From positions 1-64,000 of IMG/VR virus record IMGVR_UViG_3300043219_000566: 64,000 bases of DNA; one strand, 5' to 3'. The position numbers and the translations under genes are program-made. The notes under the pieces are model-generated. The model saw only the letters and a program-made list of their open reading frames with translations. It was not told where the DNA came from and ran no database searches. Positions 5,942 through 17,463 of this stretch are shown piece by piece (within the stretch, counting starts at the first letter, position 1; every line of letters starts with the position of its first letter).

Positions 5942-6499
5942 TCACGCCTGCTCGGCGATGCACTTCACCTGCGGAAGCTCAGCCCCGCTAGCTGGTTTAC
6001 ATAAAACCTTTCGGGCTTTAGGCTTGCGGGCTTTCCCTCGCTTCTTTGGGTTACGGGCATCACGCACCTCTTGAGGTACATCGGCAGTTACGCCGAGAGA
6101 ATCGAGGACTTTTGCGACCAGCGGCCCCAGCGCGGACAGTATCTTGGCCTGCCCGGATAATTCGAGCAGGGGATAATCAAGCTGGTTGTCCATGATGATA
6201 TGCCGCCTCTCGCGTCGCCCGGTAGCGACGTCCAACTCATACTTCACCTGATAGACAATGCGCTGGCCATCGCGAGACCCGTAATGCGCCTCGAAACGAA
6301 CTCGGGCATCTTGCTCAGTCTCGCCGTCGCGCCGGACAGTGATACCGTGCACGGATTCCAAGTGCTCGAACAGCGCCTCTTCGGTCTCGAACAACCCATG
6401 ACCGGAGACACCTCTGACCCCTTTGGTAGCAATGCAGTATTTGCATGCGATCATTCGTAACCTCCCCTGACACGTTAATGCACCAAACCTATTTCTCAA
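5942..6499 (-). CDS. hypothetical protein with N-terminal CxxC...HxxxxH zinc finger
   Basis: CKYC...EHLESVHG. Confidence 0.5.
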   Translation of the reverse strand: MRNRFGALTCQGRLRMIACKYCIATKGVRGVSGHGLFETEEALFEHLESVHGITVRRDGETEQDARVRFEAHYGSRDGQRIVYQVKYELDVATGRRERRHIIMDNQLDYPLLELSGQAKILSALGPLVAKVLDSLGVTADVPQEVRDARNPKKRGKARKPKARKVLCKPASGAELPQVKCIAEQA

Positions 6500-7401
6500 C
6501 GCCGCGCCGCCTGACGGTTCTCCTTGTACAGCTTACGCATGCGCTTGCGCAACCAGCTCTCCTGGTGATACGCATAGCGTCCCCAGTGCCGATGCAGCTT
6601 CTTCATGTCCTCGTAGTGGCGTCCGTCGATATCGGGCCAGATGTCGTGCCAGACATAGTCGAACTTGTACCGCCCGTTGGGCTTCCACACGTGAGCATCA
6701 GCATGAACCACGATCAGCTTGTCACCGTAGCGCGCCCGGTAGTGCCCAGCGACCAGCTTGATCACGTCGGCTTCTTTCTCGATCACCCAGACCTTCGTGA
6801 CCCGAGGATTATCGAGCGCAGCCTGCACCGCGACACCCAGGCCCAAGCCAGTAATGCACACAGTGCCGCTAACTTGGCCCAACCACCTGTGCTCGTGGAT
6901 CTCGGCAGGAGTGTCCGACATGATCACGTCGCTGCCTTCGCGACCTATTCGCGTATAACGCCCAGGAAAGATGAGCCGACCTTCGCGACGACCACGCACT
7001 GTGTTCTCCAGCGCAGCCGCGCTCTCGCTGACCTCAAAGCGCTCGACCACCCAACCACCGTGCTCGCCCTCTGGCACATCCACGCACCGCAGAAGACCAG
7101 GTCTCCAGCACTCCCACGAAGGATGCACCGTGCCTTGCCGCCCGCTCCGCTGCCCGTAGTAACGCCCGTGACTAGACCAGACCTCGACGTACCCGGGAAC
7201 AGAAAACGACTTCACGCGGCAACAGCGCGTATCGGCAATCACGCCGACGTTGATCGTATGGCCGACCACAAACCGGCTCCAGCCATCATTGACTTCGTCG
7301 TAAAACGCGTCACGCGCCGCGTGCGGGCGCATGATCATGCCGCCAGTACGCACGTACTTACCGTACTGGTCCTCCTTGATCTGAGTTTGAGCCATGATCA
7401 C
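6496..7401 (-). CDS. class I SAM-dependent methyltransferase (spermidine-synthase-like fold) with N-terminal extension
   Basis: VCITGLGLG (motif I), VWVIEKEADVI (motif II), VVHADA, FDYVWHDIWP. Confidence 0.75.
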   Translation of the reverse strand: MIMAQTQIKEDQYGKYVRTGGMIMRPHAARDAFYDEVNDGWSRFVVGHTINVGVIADTRCCRVKSFSVPGYVEVWSSHGRYYGQRSGRQGTVHPSWECWRPGLLRCVDVPEGEHGGWVVERFEVSESAAALENTVRGRREGRLIFPGRYTRIGREGSDVIMSDTPAEIHEHRWLGQVSGTVCITGLGLGVAVQAALDNPRVTKVWVIEKEADVIKLVAGHYRARYGDKLIVVHADAHVWKPNGRYKFDYVWHDIWPDIDGRHYEDMKKLHRHWGRYAYHQESWLRKRMRKLYKENRQAARR

Positions 7402-8711: not shown

Positions 8712-8921
8712 TCAAGAAATATGGAAAACCGGGTCGCCCTGCTCACCGTCGTAACGGTGAACATCGGCCGTCTCCAGCGCAGGCAACCGGCCTACGCCGA
8801 CAATGCTCTGCAAATCACGCATGACCTCCTTGGCTTTGATGCCAGGACTGAACACCAGCAACGCCCCGACACGATCACATTTCTCCGGAATGTCCTCATC
8901 GATGATTTTTACTTCGACCAT
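8712..8921 (-). CDS. hypothetical protein directly downstream of the TIGR array
   Basis: Strong AGGAGGAG RBS lying between the last array unit and the ATG. Confidence 0.6.
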   Translation of the reverse strand: MVEVKIIDEDIPEKCDRVGALLVFSPGIKAKEVMRDLQSIVGVGRLPALETADVHRYDGEQGDPVFHIS

Positions 8922-8942
8922 AGTGCTCCTCCTGCGAAAACA

Positions 8943-10462
8943 AACGCGCTTTTCCGAATCGGGTGTCTACAACCGGACGGCGCGCTCAACATGGGCGAGT
9001 GACTGAAGCAGAACGGCGCGCTAGTATTCGGCGGGTAACTGGGCACTCACGGCACGCTATCGTATGTTGGGTAACTAGGGTTCGGCGGCGCGCTTGTGCA
9101 AGTCGGGTGGCTACGTCCGGCCGACACGCTGACGTACAACGGATGACTGGCATCGCGAGGCGCGCTGCTGATCAATGGGGGGCTATCTCGGTATGGCACG
9201 CTAACCCGCTTCGGGTGTGACTTGCCGCGATCGGCGCGCTTCAACCATCTGGGTGACTGTTGCTATTCGGCGCGCTCTGACCCCACGAGTAACTCACACA
9301 CTCCGACACGCTCAGCTCATTCGGGTGACTGGCCGGATACGGCGCGCTGACGTTCACCGGATAACTAACATAAGGCGACACGCTTAGCTTGAGCGGGTGA
9401 CTAATCGGGGCTGGCGCGCTACGCCCGGAAGGTTAACTTTCTTGTCGCGGCACGCTGGGGACAAGCGGATGACTCGTTCTCACCGGCGCGCTAACTTGTC
9501 TAGGGTAACTGGGTCCGATCGGCACGCTAGCGTACAACGGTTGGCTCAGCCGATTCGGCCCGCTCATGCAGCTCGGAGGGCTAACCTGTAGCGGCGCGCT
9601 CTGGTGAACAGGGTGACTAATACTGGACGGCGCGCTTGGGCGACTCGGGAGACTAGATCCAAAACGGCACACTCATTCTCGTCGGGCAACTCCGGGTAAT
9701 CCGGCGCGCTTTCGAGCTAAGGGTAACTACACGAGTACGGCACGCGAATGTAACGCGGGTAACTGCTCCGCTGCGGCACGCTGCGGCACTGTGGGTAGCT
9801 TGATCGGCCTGGCACGCTTGGGCGACTCGGGCGACTGAAGTTGAGCGACACGCTGCGCCAGTACGGATGACTATATTCGTATGGCGCGCTGTTCACTGAC
9901 AGAGAGCTAAAACTGGTCAGCACGCTGCGCCAGTACGGATGTCTTGACACGTTCGGCACGCTGTTCCATCGCGGGTTACTATCCGTTGCAGGCGCGCTCT
10001 GCCTCCTAGGGTGACTGCCGCATGATGGCACGCTCCAACTACGCGGAGGACTACGTTGAAACGGCGCGCTATTGTGGTCTGGATAACTTCCACTATACGG
10101 CACGCTCCCACGACACGGGTAACTGTCCCACTCCGGCACGCTACCGCGTATAGGGTGACTTTCATCGACCGGCACGCTCAGTTTGCACGGATGTCTAATC
10201 TGCGCTAGCACGCTCCTGTTCCCCGGATGACTGGATACGTCCGGCACGCTTCTTCGCTTCGAGTTACTGTCAGCCGCAGGCACGCTACGTATTTCCGGGT
10301 AGCTAGTTTCGCACGGCACGCTCGTTCTTGCTGGATAACTCTCCTGTTCTGGCACGCTCCTGCGTCCAGGGTAACTTAGTCTGCGCGGCGCGCTCTGTTT
10401 CCGCGGATGACTGTTTCGCGACGGCGCGCTAAAACACTTCGGGTAACTGCCGTTCAGCGGCA
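8943..10462 (-). ncRNA. TIGR-like array, downstream half (about 42 units of 36 nt)
   Basis: Plus strand GG(C/A)(A/G)CGCT + 10 nt + GG(G/A)T(A/G)ACT + 10 nt, with a 36-nt period (9015, 9051, 9087 ... 10387, 10423). Minus strand reads AGYGYGCC(R)-N9-AGYYAYCC(R)-N9. Orientation is inferred from the co-oriented Nop-domain gene. Confidence 0.85.
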
Positions 10463-10474
10463 ACACACACACAA

Positions 10475-10501
10475 GGAGCCTGCGCGAATCGCGCAGGCTC
10501 C
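10475..10501 (-). terminator. 12-bp hairpin after the tasA stop (terminator or processing stem)
   Basis: GGAGCCTGCGCG-AAT-CGCGCAGGCTCC, followed on the minus strand by TTGTGTGTGTG rather than a U-tract. Confidence 0.5.
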
Positions 10502-10519
10502 CTGCATGGGCAGACAAAT

Positions 10520-11644
10520 CTACGCAGCCGCGCTGTCGCCGTGCTGCAGCTTGCGGTCCTGGTACGACGGGAAGACCGGCAGGCCTTCCAGCTTACGCCA
10601 CTGGCAGTAGAGATCCTTCAGGAACATCTTGACCATGTAACGCACCGACATCTGGTACCGACGGGCCGCACTGGTGATGTAGTGCAGCTTCCCGTCCTTA
10701 CCCTCTGCCTGCTTGCCATCGTTGTGCGTCCCGTACTGCTCGTGGTTGTTCATACGGTGCCGGTAATTGTAGTAGACCCGCGCGTACGAATCCTCCGGGC
10801 TGACCAGCACTTGCTTGCGCGGCCGCTTCCGGCGGTTCTTCTCGTCCTCGCGGCCCCAGAGCGTCGCGCCACAGACCGTCCACGTTCCTTCGACCTTGCG
10901 CTCCAGACAGCTCTTGATCCTCCGGACAACCTCGGGGGCCTCCTCGTACGTCCGCTCGTCGCAGTAATCCCACTTGCCCACCTTCAGCAAGTTGGGACCG
11001 AGCACGCCCATGAGCTTCGTCTTCAGCCACGGGTTGTACGTGACGCTGAGCCGCGTCACCTTATTGCCCGCATGGTTGGTGTACTCCCGATCAACCAGAT
11101 GCTCCTTGCGCTTGGAGCGCCCGCGGTGGTCTCCGGCGACATCGAGCCCAGCGTACTTCCACAGGCTAGACGCATACCTGGCCTTGCGGATGTCGAACTC
11201 GCTGATGATCACCGCTGCCGCAACTTCCCCGATCCCGTCGATCGAGTTCAGCCACGGCCAGATGGAGCACTCGCTCAACAGCGCAGGCAGCGATTTGACC
11301 AGCTCCTTCTCGGCCGCAAGCAAGCTGTCGAGTACCCCGAGCAGCGCCTTCTCCGCCCCGGTGGCGATCAGGCCCTCGCCCTCTTCGAGCGGAAGTTCGC
11401 TCGCCGCCGCATCCGAAAGCCGCTTGCAGCTCTCGCGGAGCGCCGCAAGGTACTCCAAGCTCTGCTTGCTCAGCTCCTTCTCGGCCTTGCCGGGTTCTTG
11501 CCCCAGCTTGAACTTGATCTCCCCCACCAGCCGGTTGCTGCACGCGATCCGCAAACGTTGCGCATCGTCGCGACCCCGGACCGCCAGGCGAACTGCTCGC
11601 CGGAAGAGATCGAAAGGGTCAATGTCTCTTACAGATGCTACCAT
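10520..11644 (-). CDS. tasA: TasA-like Nop-domain protein (IS110/Nop5-related, no recognisable RuvC or HNH domain), 374 aa
   Basis: Start MVASVRD at ATG 11644 after AGGAG. Coiled coil RDDAQRLRIACSNRL; Nop/IS110 C-terminal motif IWPWLNSIDGIGEVAAAVIISEFDIRKARYASSLWKYAGL...YNPWLKTKLMGVLG...RYMVKMFLKDLYCQWRKLEG. Flanked on both sides by 36-nt dual-repeat arrays. Confidence 0.8.
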   Translation of the reverse strand: MVASVRDIDPFDLFRRAVRLAVRGRDDAQRLRIACSNRLVGEIKFKLGQEPGKAEKELSKQSLEYLAALRESCKRLSDAAASELPLEEGEGLIATGAEKALLGVLDSLLAAEKELVKSLPALLSECSIWPWLNSIDGIGEVAAAVIISEFDIRKARYASSLWKYAGLDVAGDHRGRSKRKEHLVDREYTNHAGNKVTRLSVTYNPWLKTKLMGVLGPNLLKVGKWDYCDERTYEEAPEVVRRIKSCLERKVEGTWTVCGATLWGREDEKNRRKRPRKQVLVSPEDSYARVYYNYRHRMNNHEQYGTHNDGKQAEGKDGKLHYITSAARRYQMSVRYMVKMFLKDLYCQWRKLEGLPVFPSYQDRKLQHGDSAAA

Positions 11645-11690
11645 GGTACTTCTCCTGTGTGTGTGAATGAAACAATGTCTTCTTTCAAAG

Positions 11691-14300
11691 AAGACGCTTT
11701 TCTCAGTCGAGCAACTAGTGCTCGTCGGCACGCTTTGTTTTTCCGGATGTCTGGCCCTCGGCAGCGCGCTCCTTTTGCACGGATAACTACCTTCACTCGG
11801 CACGCTGTAGTCATCTGGATGTCTCGGCTCCGGCGGCGCGCTTAGTTACTCTGGGGGTCTAAGACCTAACGACACGCTAATTGCTGCTGGGAGACTTGTT
11901 CGTGACGGCGCGCTAGTCCCTTCTGGGTAGCTGTTTCGTGACGGCGCTCTATTAGTCCGTGGGTGGCTGCGTCTTCTCGGATCGCTAGGAGCGCGCGGAT
12001 GACTATCACGATACGGCGCGCTGAATCCCTACGGATGACTACCCGATCAAGGCGCGCTAGACGTCCACGAGTAGCTGTCACAAAGCGGCACGCTGCTGCT
12101 ACACGGATAACTAAATGCGGCAGGCGCGCTGTTCAAACATGGGTGGCTAGGGCGTGTTGGCGCGCTCAGGGCCTCTGGATTACTAAACGTTTCCGGCACG
12201 CTGTACGTCAACGGAAGACTCGTGTGATGCGGCACGCTGGGGCAATGCGGATGACTAACCAGGGCTGGCTCGCTCTCTTGTCATGGAGATCTAGGATGGA
12301 ACGGCACGCTCTGTCTTTCCGGGTGACTACCGCCGATTGGCGCGCTACTTCATCCTGGGTGACTGGACTACGTCGGCACGCTGCACGTTCGTGGGCAACT
12401 GGTGGATTGCGGCGCGCTCCGACTCACTGGGTAACTATCACCTGGTGGCGCGCTGGGGCAATCTGGGTGACTCGCACGATACGGCGGGTACGCGGCACGC
12501 TGAACTCGGCCGGGTGACTCATCAGGGACGGCACGCTCTTTTGTCGTGGGGATCTAGGCTGGAACGGCGCGCTCGGCCTTTCCGGGTGGCTGCGGTCGCG
12601 TGGCACGCTAAATCTAGGCGGGTATCTGGCCAAAAATGGCGCGCTTATGCAGCCCGGGTGGCTGACATTGCTCGGCACGCTGTACCTCAACGGAGATCTT
12701 TGTGAACGTGGCACGCTTATACGACACGGATGACTCTGGGTATGCGGCACGCTGAACTTGAGCGGGTGTCTCGCCCCGGTTGGCACGCTCCATCGTCCAG
12801 GGTGACTGGCGCGACATGGCACGCTGCACTTCTGCGGTTGTCTCCAGTCGCTTGGCGCGCTAGTCTTCTGCGGGCAACTTTAGTCGCACGACACGCTAGT
12901 CCCGCCTGGGTAACTCCGCCTTTTTGGCACGCTGGAGGAAGCTGGATGTCTACCTCGCCGCGGCACGCTAATTCCGAACGGGCGACTTATGACGCGCGGC
13001 ACGCTCCGCCCCGGCGGTTGACTGCGACTCCTTCGGCACGCTCAAGCGGTACGGGTTGCTGAGCGAACTAGGCGCGCTTTCGCGGAACGGGTGACTGTGA
13101 CTGTACGACACGCTCCGCTCGCTTGGATAGCTCCTTCTGTGCGGCGCGCTACGGTTGTTCGGGTGACTGCCACGATACGGCGCGCAAAGGCCCCTCGGGT
13201 GGCTGGCCAAAGACGGCGCGCTGGGACGGCTCGGGTGACTTAGTGGAGCTGGCGCGCTTATTGTGCGCGGAAGACTAACGCGACATGGCGCGCTCGTACG
13301 GTACGGGTGGCTATTTCGGAGCGGCACGCTAGGGTGACAAAGGAGACTTTGCTCACTCGGCGCGCTCATTCGATACGGGTGACTGAGCAAGCTAGGCGCG
13401 CTCTAAACAAGCGGTTGTCTCGTCCTGCTCGGCGCGCTGTAACCTGTCCGGGTGACTACCGCTTGTCGGCGCGCTCACTGCTTCTGGGTAACTGCCGTTT
13501 CTCGGCACGCTGAGTAGACGCGGGTAACTACCGCCTGCAGGCGCGCTATCGCTGACCGGATGACTCGGATGGAACGGCGCGCTGTGCACGTTTGGGCAAC
13601 TATTTCCGCATGGCACGCTGCACAAGCTCGGGTAGCTCGCATCATGCGGCACGCTGGTTCCTGACGGGTAGCTTGCAAGCTCAGGCGCGCTGCGCTCGCA
13701 CGGGTGACTTCTCCGCTGTGGCACGCTTTTGTCGTACGGATGACTTCTATCCTCCGGCGCGCTGATATTCTGCGGGTAGCTAACGGATGACGGCGCGCCT
13801 TCGCCGACTGGGTAACTAACGTGATACGGCACGCTGACTTCTGCTGGGCAACTTTCGACATACGGCACGCTCGACCAGCGCGGGTGTCTTGTAGCGCGTG
13901 GCGCGCTTTCTTCCCGCAGATGACTGTGCTGGTACGGCGCGCTATCTCCTTCAGGGGTGGCTAGAGCGATGCGGCACGCTATTACGGAACGGGTAACTCG
14001 GCCTAATTGGCGCACTGGACCGACACGGGTAGCTCGTGGCACGCGGTACGCTTATGTCCTACGGGTGTCTGGCATCTCACGACACGCTGTTCTTGCAAGG
14101 ATGACTTCCGCCAGACGGCGCGCTAAGTTGTCCCGAGTGGCTTCTATTGGACGGCGCGCTCGGCTGGCTCGGGTGACTGACAATGGACAGCACGCTAACT
14201 TCGTCGGGGTGACTGAGTTTCCACGGCGCGCTAATTGTGCCCGGATGACTAGCGTTGGACGGCACGCTGTAATCCAACGGGTAACTCCACTACTACGGCG
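11691..14300 (-). ncRNA. TIGR-like array, upstream half (about 72 units of 36 nt plus one truncated unit)
   Basis: Same alternating GGCRCGCT / GGRTRACT 8-mers with 10-nt variable gaps from 11691 to 14297; a few 37-nt units and a partial unit at 12483-12493. Confidence 0.85.
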
Positions 14301-15162
14301 TCGATCGAATCCGGTTGAGCATCTCCGACAAGTCGACTAGCCCAACCGCGCCATCACCGTCGGAATCGTACTCATCGTTCATCTCGCCGTAAACCGACAG
14401 CAACCCCGCAAGATCCGCCAGCGTAGCCGGAGCGCTCTCAATGATGATGATCGAACAACCGCGCCGCCCGGCAAGCAAGTTCCACCCACCATACTGTTCG
14501 TCGTAGATGGCGCTGTGTGAGTACATGTTGAACGAGAGCGGAATCTCGATCGTAGAGTTCGGCGCTATAGCAAGCGCCTCGAAGTGAAGCGTGTCGATCA
14601 ATAGGCCAGCCGGAGTTGCCTCTGGGAACGGACCCATACTGGCCCAGGCCTGGTAATCAGCAGTTCCATCCTCGTTGGTGTTGTTGATGCCGCCCAGCCC
14701 GCTGTCCGGCGGAAACCCCTGGAACATCCATTGACCACCGGACGTAGGATCAGGCGGCCAAGCCCCACCCTCGCCAACCAGCCGCAGCTCAGTCGGGTCC
14801 CACTGCAACAAGCAGTCGAGCAGGCAAAACGGTTCGTTCTGCCCAACCGCGAAGATGTGCACGTCGACGATGTCGCCTACGTGCCTCGTCTCGGCAGTGC
14901 AGCGTAGTTCAAGATCGACCGGAAGGTTGGCATTGGCCGGAACATCGTAGGCGAACACCGCGGTTGCAAAGGGCTCGTCGGTGCCCCACTCGTTGTCGTC
15001 CACCGCGTACAGCTCAACATAGACAGTGTCGCCTATTTCCGCGGCAGGAGTTTCAGTCCGCAGATCCAAATCAATAACCCGCCAGTCTTGAGCTTGCGCG
15101 CAGCAAACCGCCGCAACAGCTAGCACTGATGCAACCAGCGCCATTTTCCAAATCCGGGACAT
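14293..15162 (-). CDS. secreted protein with cohesin-like domain(s) and C-terminal dockerin/EF-hand-like motif
   Basis: Signal peptide ending AAVCCAQA; HVGDIVDVHIFAV...LQWDPTELRLVG; C-terminal LADLAGLLSVYG...YDSDGDGAVGLVDLSEML. Confidence 0.6.
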   Translation of the reverse strand: MSRIWKMALVASVLAVAAVCCAQAQDWRVIDLDLRTETPAAEIGDTVYVELYAVDDNEWGTDEPFATAVFAYDVPANANLPVDLELRCTAETRHVGDIVDVHIFAVGQNEPFCLLDCLLQWDPTELRLVGEGGAWPPDPTSGGQWMFQGFPPDSGLGGINNTNEDGTADYQAWASMGPFPEATPAGLLIDTLHFEALAIAPNSTIEIPLSFNMYSHSAIYDEQYGGWNLLAGRRGCSIIIIESAPATLADLAGLLSVYGEMNDEYDSDGDGAVGLVDLSEMLNRIRSTP

Positions 15163-15207: not shown

Positions 15208-15432
15208 TCACGCTAACACCGTCATCAGTTTATCGGACTGCAGCTTAGCGACCCGCTTTTCGTCGTCAAGAATCTCACGCCTGATGCGACGGATATTACG
15301 GCGCGCCCGAGCCAAGTTATCTTGCGCCCGGCGCAACTGCTCCTTCAGCTCCGATTGGCTGCCCAGATAATGCGCCGGGAGCCACGTTCCCTCCCGGTGC
15401 AGCAGCTGGACGCTCACCGCCGCAGCCTTCAT
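15208..15432 (-). CDS. small coiled-coil protein
   Basis: LKEQLRRAQDNLARARRNIRRIRREILDDEKRV. Confidence 0.4.
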   Translation of the reverse strand: MKAAAVSVQLLHREGTWLPAHYLGSQSELKEQLRRAQDNLARARRNIRRIRREILDDEKRVAKLQSDKLMTVLA

Positions 15433-16168
15433 CAGATCTCTCCTTCCCCCCAGCCGTTTCAAAAGACATAAGCTCGAAGTTGCACGCACCGACGAAGAAA
15501 TCTCCTTCGCTCGCGTACTCGACATCGAGCACCACCCAGAACTTCGTTACGTCGTTCTTGGGGTCGGTATCGGTGCAATTGCCCCAGACCTGCAGGCTGC
15601 AGCCCTTCGCGTTGCAAGCCCCGCCGCCGCCGACGCAGAACGTGCGTAGAACGTCGGCTTGCAGATACTTCAGCACCCCGGCATCCGGCCCCAACGACAT
15701 GCAATGCGGCGGATAGTGCGTGTCCTCGACCGACATCCACAGCATGCCCGACATGACGTAGGTTCCCTGCTCGACCTTGATCGGAGAGCAGTCCATCCCG
15801 TACGAGAAACAACCGTCCTGGCCGCCGTTGAACTCGCAATCTCCGCAATCACCAACGCAGTCCGAGTCGTACTCGAAGTGGTAATCTACGCGCGGGTAAC
15901 CAGGGTACAGACCGATCTTGGCGTGCACTTCGGTAAGCACGCCCAGCGACACGCCCTGCTCGTGATCGTACAGAGGCACGTCGAAGTCCACGTACGTATA
16001 GACCACGCCGTCCTTGTTGAACTTGCTCAACGGAACAACGAACTCAGCGTAAGCGTCGCCGTTAATCACGAAAAACCGAAAAGCCCGCGCAGGATCGTCC
16101 AACGTCGGGCCGTCTGCCGCAGCGGAACACACTAGCAGCAGCGCGCAAAGTAGACTGACAAGATTCAT
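15317..16168 (-). CDS. secreted Cys-rich protein
   Basis: Signal peptide MNLVSLLCALLLVCSAAA; many Cys and acidic residues. Confidence 0.55.
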   Translation of the reverse strand: MNLVSLLCALLLVCSAAADGPTLDDPARAFRFFVINGDAYAEFVVPLSKFNKDGVVYTYVDFDVPLYDHEQGVSLGVLTEVHAKIGLYPGYPRVDYHFEYDSDCVGDCGDCEFNGGQDGCFSYGMDCSPIKVEQGTYVMSGMLWMSVEDTHYPPHCMSLGPDAGVLKYLQADVLRTFCVGGGGACNAKGCSLQVWGNCTDTDPKNDVTKFWVVLDVEYASEGDFFVGACNFELMSFETAGGKERSDEGCGGERPAAAPGGNVAPGALSGQPIGAEGAVAPGAR

Positions 16169-16203
16169 TCGGACATCTCCTGTGCACGCGCCTGAAAGCG
16201 CGG

Positions 16204-17463
16204 CTAGGGCCAATACGTCGGGTGCGGGCGGTGCGCCACGCGCACCAGGTGCAACCCGTCCACGAACCGAAAATTATGCCGGTGGCCGTAGTCTACCAAC
16301 CGCCCGGATTGCACAAAAGAAATGTCGGCAAAGGTCACGCCGCGCGTGCTGCCGTCGAGCCGAATGAAGGTCCGCGCCGCCCAGGCCTCGTCGTGCAGAC
16401 AGCTAATCTGGATGTTGTTCGTCCCGCCGCCCAGCACCTCGTTGTCCCCGGAATCGCCCAACACGAACACCGCGTCGAGCCCCCCGGCGGTCTTGGCCGA
16501 AACGTAGACGTCGCGAATCCAGAGCGAGTGCGTGCGCGAGCCCAACTTGAACACGTAGCGCTCGGCCGGATCGGAGCCCGGTGGTGCAAGATCGCACGCG
16601 AAGAAACAGCTGCCGTCGATCACGCCTCCGGCGTTGCTAACCGCCTCGCTCGCCCCGGGTGTAAAGCCCCCCGCAATCGGCCCGTGCGGCGACGTGATCC
16701 GATAGTCGTTGTACGCACTGGTATAGAACGCCCCGCCCTTTTTGCCGGAAAACCGAAAGTAGCTCGCATCCGTGATTCGGTAAACTTCGCAGCCGATATT
16801 GACCACGCACGCGCCGCCGTAGGGGTTGGCGTCACCGTACCTCCCGCGGATCTTGCAGTGCCTGACGATCACGCCTCCGGAGCCCGCCATCGCAGCCGAG
16901 CGCCCCAGCAAGATTCCGCAGCCCGGTGGGGTGTAGGCCTCGTCCGGCCGAATGATCAGCCCTTCGAGCGTCGCCCAGTTGGAGCTGGCCATATCGACCA
17001 CCGGCGCGGTCGCCAGCTGCGGTGGAAACTGCACGTGCGCCAGGTAGTTGTGCTCGAAGCGCAAGTTCGTGCGCCCGGCATGGCGGAAGTCCAGCGTCTG
17101 AGGCCAGACCGTGTACGGCACGTACGGCACGTAGATGTCGCCGCCCGCGCGCTTGGCCCGGATCTGGGACTGCACGAACCAGAACTCAAGGTACATCTCG
17201 CGCAGAATCTCGTCGGGCAACAGCCCCGCGGTGGAGCGGAACTGCTCGGCCCGCGCCCGCGCTTCCGGCGTCGTCGGCGACAGCCCCTCCTTCTCCAACT
17301 GCTCCAAGAACTCCTGGATAGCCTTGTCGGGCGCGGGCGCTTGCTCATGCGGAAGCGGTACCGCGACACGCGCGGGTGCCTGTGGCTTTGTCTGAGGCGC
17401 GGCCTTCGGCTGCGCGCAAGCCACCACAGCCAACAGCGGCAACAACAACCAAGCTCTGATCAT
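16204..17463 (-). CDS. secreted protein or lipoprotein, possible beta-helix (pectin-lyase-like) repeats
   Basis: MIRAWLLLPLLAVVACAQ signal; beta-repeat-like segments such as VIVRHCKIRG, LWIRDVYV, IQISCL, VTFADISF. Confidence 0.45.
   Translation of the reverse strand: MIRAWLLLPLLAVVACAQPKAAPQTKPQAPARVAVPLPHEQAPAPDKAIQEFLEQLEKEGLSPTTPEARARAEQFRSTAGLLPDEILREMYLEFWFVQSQIRAKRAGGDIYVPYVPYTVWPQTLDFRHAGRTNLRFEHNYLAHVQFPPQLATAPVVDMASSNWATLEGLIIRPDEAYTPPGCGILLGRSAAMAGSGGVIVRHCKIRGRYGDANPYGGACVVNIGCEVYRITDASYFRFSGKKGGAFYTSAYNDYRITSPHGPIAGGFTPGASEAVSNAGGVIDGSCFFACDLAPPGSDPAERYVFKLGSRTHSLWIRDVYVSAKTAGGLDAVFVLGDSGDNEVLGGGTNNIQISCLHDEAWAARTFIRLDGSTRGVTFADISFVQSGRLVDYGHRHNFRFVDGLHLVRVAHRPHPTYWP

Follow-up and report, generated by a model that had tools for sequence, protein, structure and literature searches.

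The window analysed here is a 64,000-nt stretch of DNA that opens IMG/VR virus record IMGVR_UViG_3300043219_000566, which is 216,501 bp long and rated complete. It encodes a phage replication module comprising a DNA polymerase, a primase, two helicases, SbcCD-like proteins and a UvsX-like recombinase. On the minus strand it also carries a TIGR-Tas locus: a tasA gene encoding a 374-residue protein (hereafter called P0001), bounded directly on both sides by arrays of guide-RNA (tigRNA) repeats and spacers. P0001 has neither of the nuclease domains found in its structurally solved relatives, and its Nop domain is interrupted by an insert of about 60 residues. The features of the locus are as follows (CTD, C-terminal domain; aa, residues of P0001).

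11693..14299, minus strand: upstream dual-repeat TIGR array, about 72 units of 36 nt (repeat parse)
11677..11695, minus strand: terminator-like hairpin that closes the upstream array, immediately ahead of the tasA ribosome-binding site (sequence and scan)
10520..11644, minus strand: tasA gene, 374 aa, coiled coil plus Nop/IS110-type C-terminal domain (ribosome-binding site, Pfam, NCBIfam, model, TasH/TasR matches)
11276..11617, minus strand: coiled-coil hairpin, aa 10-123, predicted dimer interface (model helices 10-46 and 96-123; homodimer prediction)
10979..11260, minus strand: Nop core part 1, aa 129-222, with helix-hairpin-helix (CTD1), wedge beta-hairpin (aa 184-200) and CTD2 helix (aa 205-222) (model, alignments)
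10790..10975, minus strand: the insert, aa 224-285, small and rich in beta structure, acidic in its N-terminal half, at the site called 'insertion 1' (alignments, model, omega)
10820..10900, minus strand: lineage-specific sub-insert, about aa 249-275, beta-hairpin plus flexible basic arm (alignments, model)
10523..10789, minus strand: Nop core part 2, aa 286-374, with CTD3 helix, insertion 2 (aa ~300-325), long CTD4/5 helix and C-terminal tail (model, alignments)
10562..10564, minus strand: Y361 of the putative guide-RNA processing dyad (aligns with SpTasH Y289)
10541..10543, minus strand: H368 of the same dyad (aligns with SpTasH H296)
10475..10501, minus strand: GC-rich hairpin with a T/G-rich run after it, in the gap that separates the tasA stop codon from the downstream array (read by eye; the automated scan did not call it)
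8945..10461, minus strand: downstream dual-repeat TIGR array, about 42 units whose repeats match those upstream (repeat parse)

The open reading frame of P0001 opens with an ATG at 11644, and the last base of its stop codon is 10520; an AGGAGA ribosome-binding site precedes the ATG by 7 nt. The longest formal open reading frame starts earlier, at a GTG at 11803. Its 53 added codons run across TIGR repeat units and the hairpin at 11677..11695, so we take ATG 11644 to be the true start and the extension to be non-coding. A public gene call (P0002, 344 aa, 10520..11554) begins at P0001 residue 31 and thus loses the conserved N-terminal part of the first coiled-coil helix.

P0001 is a TasA of the dual-repeat type by the published definition, under which TasA is a solo Nop-domain Tas (Faure et al. 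2025, PMC12045711), because it consists of a coiled coil and a Nop domain with no RuvC or HNH. At E ≤ 10 the sole Pfam match is Transposase_20 (PF02371; aa 132-181), and no nuclease family is matched. P0001 passes the 100-bit cut-off of the NCBIfam family NF052498, 'TIGR-Tas system RNA-guided endonuclease', with 103.1 bits (aa 19-350, 215-position model), and PDB sequence searches return TasH and TasR. An AlphaFold2 model built on 149 relatives (predicted local distance difference test, pLDDT, 89.9; predicted template-modelling score 0.87) contains no elements beyond the coiled-coil hairpin, helix-hairpin-helix, wedge beta-hairpin and CTD helices. Its best structural matches are TasH (Z 18.7) and TasR (Z 18.2; root-mean-square deviation 2.3), followed by the IS621 recombinase (Z 13.6) and Nop5/Prp31 (Z about 7.7). 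The solved TasH and TasR chains align to P0001 only from behind their nuclease domains. The coiled coil begins at residue 10, after just nine residues, and the non-coding in-frame extension would add only 53 more. The initial annotation had read the protein as starting directly with the coiled coil, with no N-terminal RuvC and no HNH, and had proposed the comparison with TasH and TasR; Pfam, the model and that comparison all bear the reading out.

The named family carries a hazard of its own. NF052498 is called an RNA-guided endonuclease even though its model spans only the coiled coil and Nop domain, and under that name nuclease-free TasA proteins would be annotated as endonucleases.

We also considered an IS110-family RNA-guided transposase and ruled it out: the NCBIfam IS110 model NF033542, whose cut-off is 140 bits, reaches only 29.2 and aligns to no more than the coiled-coil/helix-hairpin-helix part, and the P0001 model has no N-terminal domain. 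The IS110/IS621 recombinases and Nop5/Nop56/58/Prp31 share with P0001 the fold of the coiled coil and C-terminal RNA-binding domain, and P0001 itself matches Pfam Transposase_20. Unlike them, P0001 comes without a RuvC-like recombinase domain, a Tnp serine domain, or fibrillarin or L7Ae partners.

The coiled coil is predicted to form a homodimer. The prediction scores 0.42 against 0.00 for the best control, with at least 85% of contacts common to the runs and a pLDDT of 68 or higher; the mark on this score is reached by 21 of 30 solved homodimers and by none of 23 single chains. All confident contacts fall within residues 8-46 and 95-118. The prediction shows, and may merely reflect, likeness to solved Tas dimers.

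Four coiled-coil residues that are 97-100% conserved in 147 relatives are changed in this lineage (Y26D, G36S, F87E and, in P0001, Y105L; window ~11330..11569), which sets P0001 apart from other dual-repeat TasA proteins. At position 105, P0003, the TasA of a related phage described below, has F. The coiled-coil tip near residue 87 is itself modelled with low confidence (block aa 81-90, pLDDT 58).

P0001 is probably not free of all nuclease chemistry. SpTasH cuts its own pre-tigRNA in a metal-independent reaction that uses Y289 and H296 (PMC13421893). P0001 Y361 and H368 match these two residues in the alignment, with identical Y-x6-H spacing, and each is conserved in at least 90% of 149 relatives. 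Retention of this dyad suggests that P0001 probably cuts guide-precursor RNA, but not DNA.

The two arrays lie on the tasA strand with a period of 36 nt, and together they hold about 114 units, 108 of which pass a strict parse. Each unit opens with an edge repeat (AGCGYGCCR); spacer A, the loop repeat (AGYYAYCCR) and spacer B follow in that order, and both spacers are 9 nt long. The repeats begin with an invariant AG, have CC near their end and hold 1.6-2.0 bits of information per position; the spacers hold less than 0.3. Truncated edge repeats stand at all array ends (14296-14299, 11693-11698, 10458-10461 and 8945-8950), just as truncated edge repeats terminate dual-repeat TIGR arrays in the published layout (Faure et al. 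2025, PMC12045711), and it is this that identifies AGCGYGCCR as the edge repeat. Dual-repeat arrays average about 16 units (65,635 units in 4,126 arrays; Xu et al. 2026, bioRxiv 10.64898/2026.09.09.750476). Guides occupy about 4.1 kb of this phage genome.

A closely similar locus is present in a related phage (L002; 649-3976 of a 40,991-bp Logan contig), which has the same repeats, arrays on both sides of the gene and syntenic neighbours. Its TasA (P0003) is 74% identical to P0001 and has the same insert.

The initial annotation had placed an insert of about 60 residues, with three cysteines and a basic patch, before the YARVYYNYR helix. That description was accurate. The insert (aa 224-285) lies between the CTD2 and CTD3 helices, its cysteines are C228, C246 and C258, and its basic stretch is K269-K277. 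The span from G216 to Y287 is 70 residues in P0001 versus 9-12 in 216 of 265 relatives (collected in two database searches), an excess of about 58-60 residues. In a profile alignment to the solved chains the insert falls at TaTasR Q247-T249, which is the published 'insertion 1' site between CTD2 and CTD3 (Xu et al. 2026, bioRxiv 10.64898/2026.09.09.750476). It also starts three residues after K221, the lysine at the end of the CTD2 helix that aligns with SpTasH K211. In SpTasH, K211 is carried with W203 on helix alpha4, and it is reported to insert into double-stranded DNA and unwind it (PMC13421893).

The modelled insert has five strands (224-227, 241-244, 248-251, 254-257 and 277-282) and two helices (230-235 and 265-271). 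Its base is modelled with high confidence (pLDDT 94-96), and the whole element lies outside the predicted dimer interface. A language-model search for look-alikes of the insert alone gave a best score of 0.87, under the lead threshold, and no named family.

The insert is neither universal among the relatives nor unique to P0001. The G216-Y287 span is at least 30 residues in 28 of the 265 and at least 55 in seven. About 15 cluster representatives have in common a homologous insert core of ~33 residues, in which a basic residue precedes Trp, an aromatic residue comes a few positions later, and Pro-Glu, Arg-Arg-(Ile/Leu)-Lys and finally a returning strand follow. P0001 and P0003 alone add ~27 residues in the middle of this core, and it is this addition that holds C246, C258 and K269-K277. 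Other large inserts at the site (59-83 aa; for example in P0127, P0159 and P0143) have unrelated sequences.

All three cysteines, the Trp and the basic stretch are kept in P0003; no cysteine is conserved beyond the two phages. Because each of C228, C246 and C258 is placed after a predicted beta strand, and all three are conserved in both proteins, they might form a metal- or redox-sensitive regulatory site. We consider this highly improbable: there are only three cysteines with no conserved fourth ligand, and none is conserved in the ~15 core-module relatives. A zinc site in particular was set aside because the cysteines go no further than the two phages.

Between P0001 and P0003, omega (the ratio of nonsynonymous to synonymous substitution rates) is 0.44 for the 64 codons of the insert, while the coiled coil has 0.30 and the Nop core 0.18. 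Purifying selection acts on the insert, although it constrains it less tightly than the Nop core. Could it nevertheless be an addition that a variable loop simply tolerates, without a specific function? The site is indeed a hot spot, at which other relatives bear several of the unrelated 59-83-residue sequences, the insert-bearing proteins are scattered on a poorly resolved tree, and the lineage-specific part is modelled at low confidence. That the insert would nonetheless show an omega of 0.44, no indels in its 64 codons at a synonymous divergence (dS) of ~0.7, and conserved Cys, Trp and basic residues makes an idle loop very unlikely in our estimation.

The tree in question, of 263 relatives with the insert columns left out, leaves 118 of 260 forks open, so that gains and losses of the insert are indistinguishable. 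An origin of the insert from array DNA, or as intragenic tigRNAs, was rejected: the gene contains no chain of repeat units, only a weak 15-nt tandem match of 2.1 copies.

In stem-loop Tas clades, insertions co-vary with tigRNA features, and insertion 1 lies inside the tigRNA spacer loop (Xu et al. 2026, bioRxiv 10.64898/2026.09.09.750476). On that precedent the P0001 insert could adapt the protein to its guide, by filling the spacer loop, separating the spacers or accommodating an unusual tigRNA. However, the tigRNA unit at this locus follows the standard dual-repeat design: it spans 36 nt, and its spacers and loop repeat are 9 nt each. Moreover, relatives that have no insert (L008, L009) and relatives with the ~33-residue module (L003, L006) share this period and have almost identical repeats (AGCGNGCC and AGNNANCC). 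The period and repeats recur in L007, which has an unrelated 72-residue insert and a degenerate array, and in L002. With the same period and repeats whether or not an insert is present, the repeats indicate that the insert does not co-vary with tigRNA architecture. We therefore regard adaptation to the guide as rather unlikely, although a spacer-separating role would overlap with the explanation we prefer, in which the insert contacts nucleic acid where the target DNA is unwound.

The initial annotation had also suggested that the insert might recruit another effector. Stated more fully, the insert would be a docking platform that brings a separate effector or host factor to the bound target. 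It is surface-exposed, clear of the predicted dimer interface and under purifying selection, and it is bipolar (an acidic helix and a basic arm) with three cysteines conserved in both phages. What is missing is a candidate partner. The arrays bound the gene directly, and nine neighbouring open reading frames gave no Pfam or NCBIfam match and no ParB-like or nuclease match; their only PHROG match is a methyltransferase (phrog_15480, E 1e-36) at 6496..7401, minus strand, three genes past the array. Nor do relatives with the insert core keep common company: their gene neighbourhoods are unrelated, L004, for example, sitting among M10 peptidases and an integrase. The published protein associations of TasA are similarly bare, with none clear except an occasional ParB-like gene, tasParB (Faure et al. 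2025, PMC12045711); no tasParB-like partner was detected among the scanned neighbours. Finally, in solved Tas complexes the loop at the insert site, already known to be variable, is in contact with nucleic acid. The suggestion of effector recruitment thus found no support, and we think it distinctly unlikely.

The explanation we lean towards, and judge modestly probable, is that P0001 is a dual-repeat TIGR-TasA that acts as a roadblock on DNA, with an insert that adds contacts at the unwinding junction. The tigRNA held by a Tas dimer unwinds an 18-bp site by pairing one of its two spacers with each strand (Faure et al. 2025, PMC12045711). MbTasA shows guide-dependent DNA binding in electrophoretic mobility shift assays and represses a reporter without cleavage (Xu et al. 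2026, bioRxiv 10.64898/2026.09.09.750476). Guide-dependent DNA binding with repression or roadblock action has likewise been shown for PlTasA and FpTasA (bioRxiv 10.64898/2026.08.11.744272), and TasA-mediated repression has been published as guide-dependent and reversible. The initial annotation's view of an RNA-guided repressor or roadblock agrees with these experiments, and the idea is already in print.

Applied to this locus, the mechanism would run as follows. A dimer mediated by the coiled coil would bind the 36-nt tigRNAs that its own Y361 and H368 probably cut out of the arrays on either side. The two 9-nt spacers of each tigRNA would pair with opposite strands of an 18-bp target. The complex would keep the DNA unwound but uncut, and so would serve as a roadblock or repressor against host DNA or the DNA of competing elements. 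The beta-rich base of the insert and its flexible basic arm (K269-K277) would make contacts at the junction where the DNA is unwound, with the DNA backbone, with the displaced strand or with the duplex of spacer and DNA. These contacts would stabilise target binding in a protein that has no RuvC or HNH domain to supply them.

Three published observations make junction contacts the most likely role of the insert in our view. Insertion 1 is located within the tigRNA spacer loop (Xu et al. 2026, bioRxiv 10.64898/2026.09.09.750476). In the cryo-electron microscopy structure of PlTasA, a hairpin from helix alpha4 reaches the DNA unwinding junction and places an Arg on the backbone where the strands separate (bioRxiv 10.64898/2026.08.11.744272). 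And in TasR repressors, inactive RuvC domains still supply DNA contacts. RNA-guided binding and repression by P0001, like the contacts of its insert, are what we infer from the family, whereas its identity and architecture, and the position, distribution and constraint of the insert, are read directly from the locus and its relatives.

Several points weigh against this explanation or narrow its reach. Residues 241-270, which include the lineage-specific part, are modelled at low confidence (pLDDT 53-72, lowest at aa 259-264). The stretch equivalent to the basic arm in the shorter-module relatives is of mixed charge and not strongly basic, and a DNA-contact role may apply to the P0001/P0003 lineage only. 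PlTasA is a stem-loop TasA, and the correspondence of its hairpin to the P0001 insert is putative. The only public run with DNA of the locus is a marine-sediment DNA metagenome, its probable source, and no public RNA run has the locus. When 103 spacer pairs were compared with the whole 216.5-kb genome, in both strand arrangements and with the arrays masked, there were no self-targets at 0-1 mismatch; matches at 2-3 mismatches equalled the level of shuffled spacers. Similarly, there was no cross-targeting between this phage and L002 in the available sequence at 0-1 mismatch, and the two have no spacers in common. Since they have the same locus and yet no common spacer, their spacers turn over rapidly while the repeats are conserved.

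Candidate roles for the system, here as in the literature, are host silencing, competition between mobile elements or something else.

How does P0001 compare with its characterized relatives? Like FpTasA from Flavonifractor plautii and other dual-repeat TasA proteins (PMC12045711), it is a solo coiled coil plus Nop domain with no nuclease domain, it has 36-nt arrays with truncated edge repeats at their ends, and it is phage-borne, as they often are. It differs from them in its ~60 extra residues at insertion 1, in the coiled-coil substitutions described above (at residues at least 97% conserved) and in its unusually long arrays on both sides (about 72 and 42 units). Published surveys describe the Nop core of dual-repeat Tas proteins as compact and nearly invariant. 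P0001 departs from this, with an insertion 1 some 60 residues longer than in 216 of the 265 relatives, though compactness is a trend among dual-repeat proteins and does not define membership.

The stem-loop proteins MbTasA and PlTasA (10.64898/2026.09.09.750476, 10.64898/2026.08.11.744272) are nuclease-free and dimeric; P0001 is nuclease-free and a predicted dimer. The accessory hairpin that PlTasA extends from alpha4 to the unwinding junction corresponds in region to the P0001 insert. By contrast with these two proteins, P0001 uses dual repeats and keeps Y361 and H368, and its insert is far larger than the 11-residue hairpin.

SpTasH (PDB 9w03/9w04/9vzx) and TaTasR (PDB 9mty), the best structural matches, share with P0001 the coiled coil, the helix-hairpin-helix, the wedge hairpin, the CTD helices and the lysine equivalent to K211, and SpTasH also shares the Y/H dyad. 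Unlike P0001, both carry an N-terminal HNH or RuvC domain and cut DNA, and their insertion 1 is a three-residue turn (TaTasR Q247-T249).

The TIGR-Tas system, the nuclease-free subtype, its repressor activity and the insertion site have all been described before, and the advance is therefore incremental, a real but modest variation on a published system. What is particular to the P0001 locus is the size and two-layer make-up of insertion 1, the changed coiled-coil surface and the very long arrays. Insertion 1 emerges as a recurrent expansion site in dual-repeat TasA as well, with the guide RNA unchanged. TIGR-Tas proteins are under development as very small programmable DNA binders that are free of a protospacer-adjacent motif, and natural elaborations at the TasA unwinding junction could teach how such a binder might be given higher affinity or a longer dwell time.

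A stronger interpretation is that the enlarged insertion 1 is an autonomous, Cys-containing basic mini-domain with an added activity, and that together with the changed coiled coil and the ~114 guides it defines a jumbo-phage subtype of TasA. We think this quite improbable. If the mini-domain were real, it might clamp the displaced strand and so make transient binding a roadblock that lasts, or it might dock a factor of the phage or the host; if the subtype were distinct, jumbo phages would use it to silence host or rival DNA on a large scale.

The genes upstream of the array have some features of their own. Those at 14293..15162 and 15317..16213, minus strand, encode products with N-terminal hydrophobic, signal-like segments, neither of which has a match in Pfam, PHROGs or NCBIfam. 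The product of 14293..15162 ends in an Asp/Gly-rich segment that looks dockerin- or EF-hand-like by eye, and its homologue in L002 ends alike. The first unit of the upstream array begins within the end of this gene (overlap 14293..14299), and the TAG stop codon of the gene provides the first three bases of spacer A. A scan of 8800..14500 found no sigma-70-type promoter-like site, which would fit co-transcription of the array with the upstream gene.

The upstream array is irregular at ~12390..12501, minus strand, where a 47-nt spacing and degenerate repeats divide it into ~49 and ~20 regular units, and five further units measure 37-38 nt. A few spacers recur within an array (TACTGGCGC twice and AGTCGCCCA twice, in units 9962/9890 and 9854/9673), and the L002 arrays contain families of near-identical spacers. 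These repetitions hint that the arrays grow partly by duplication of units followed by divergence.

Because the 36-nt period equals 12 codons and the repeats have no stop codons, the arrays also read as long open frames (9717..10517, 13392..14042 and 12968..13390, minus strand, among others). Their repetitive 'SYP...SVP' products reach 266 aa, and gene callers could mistake them for proteins.

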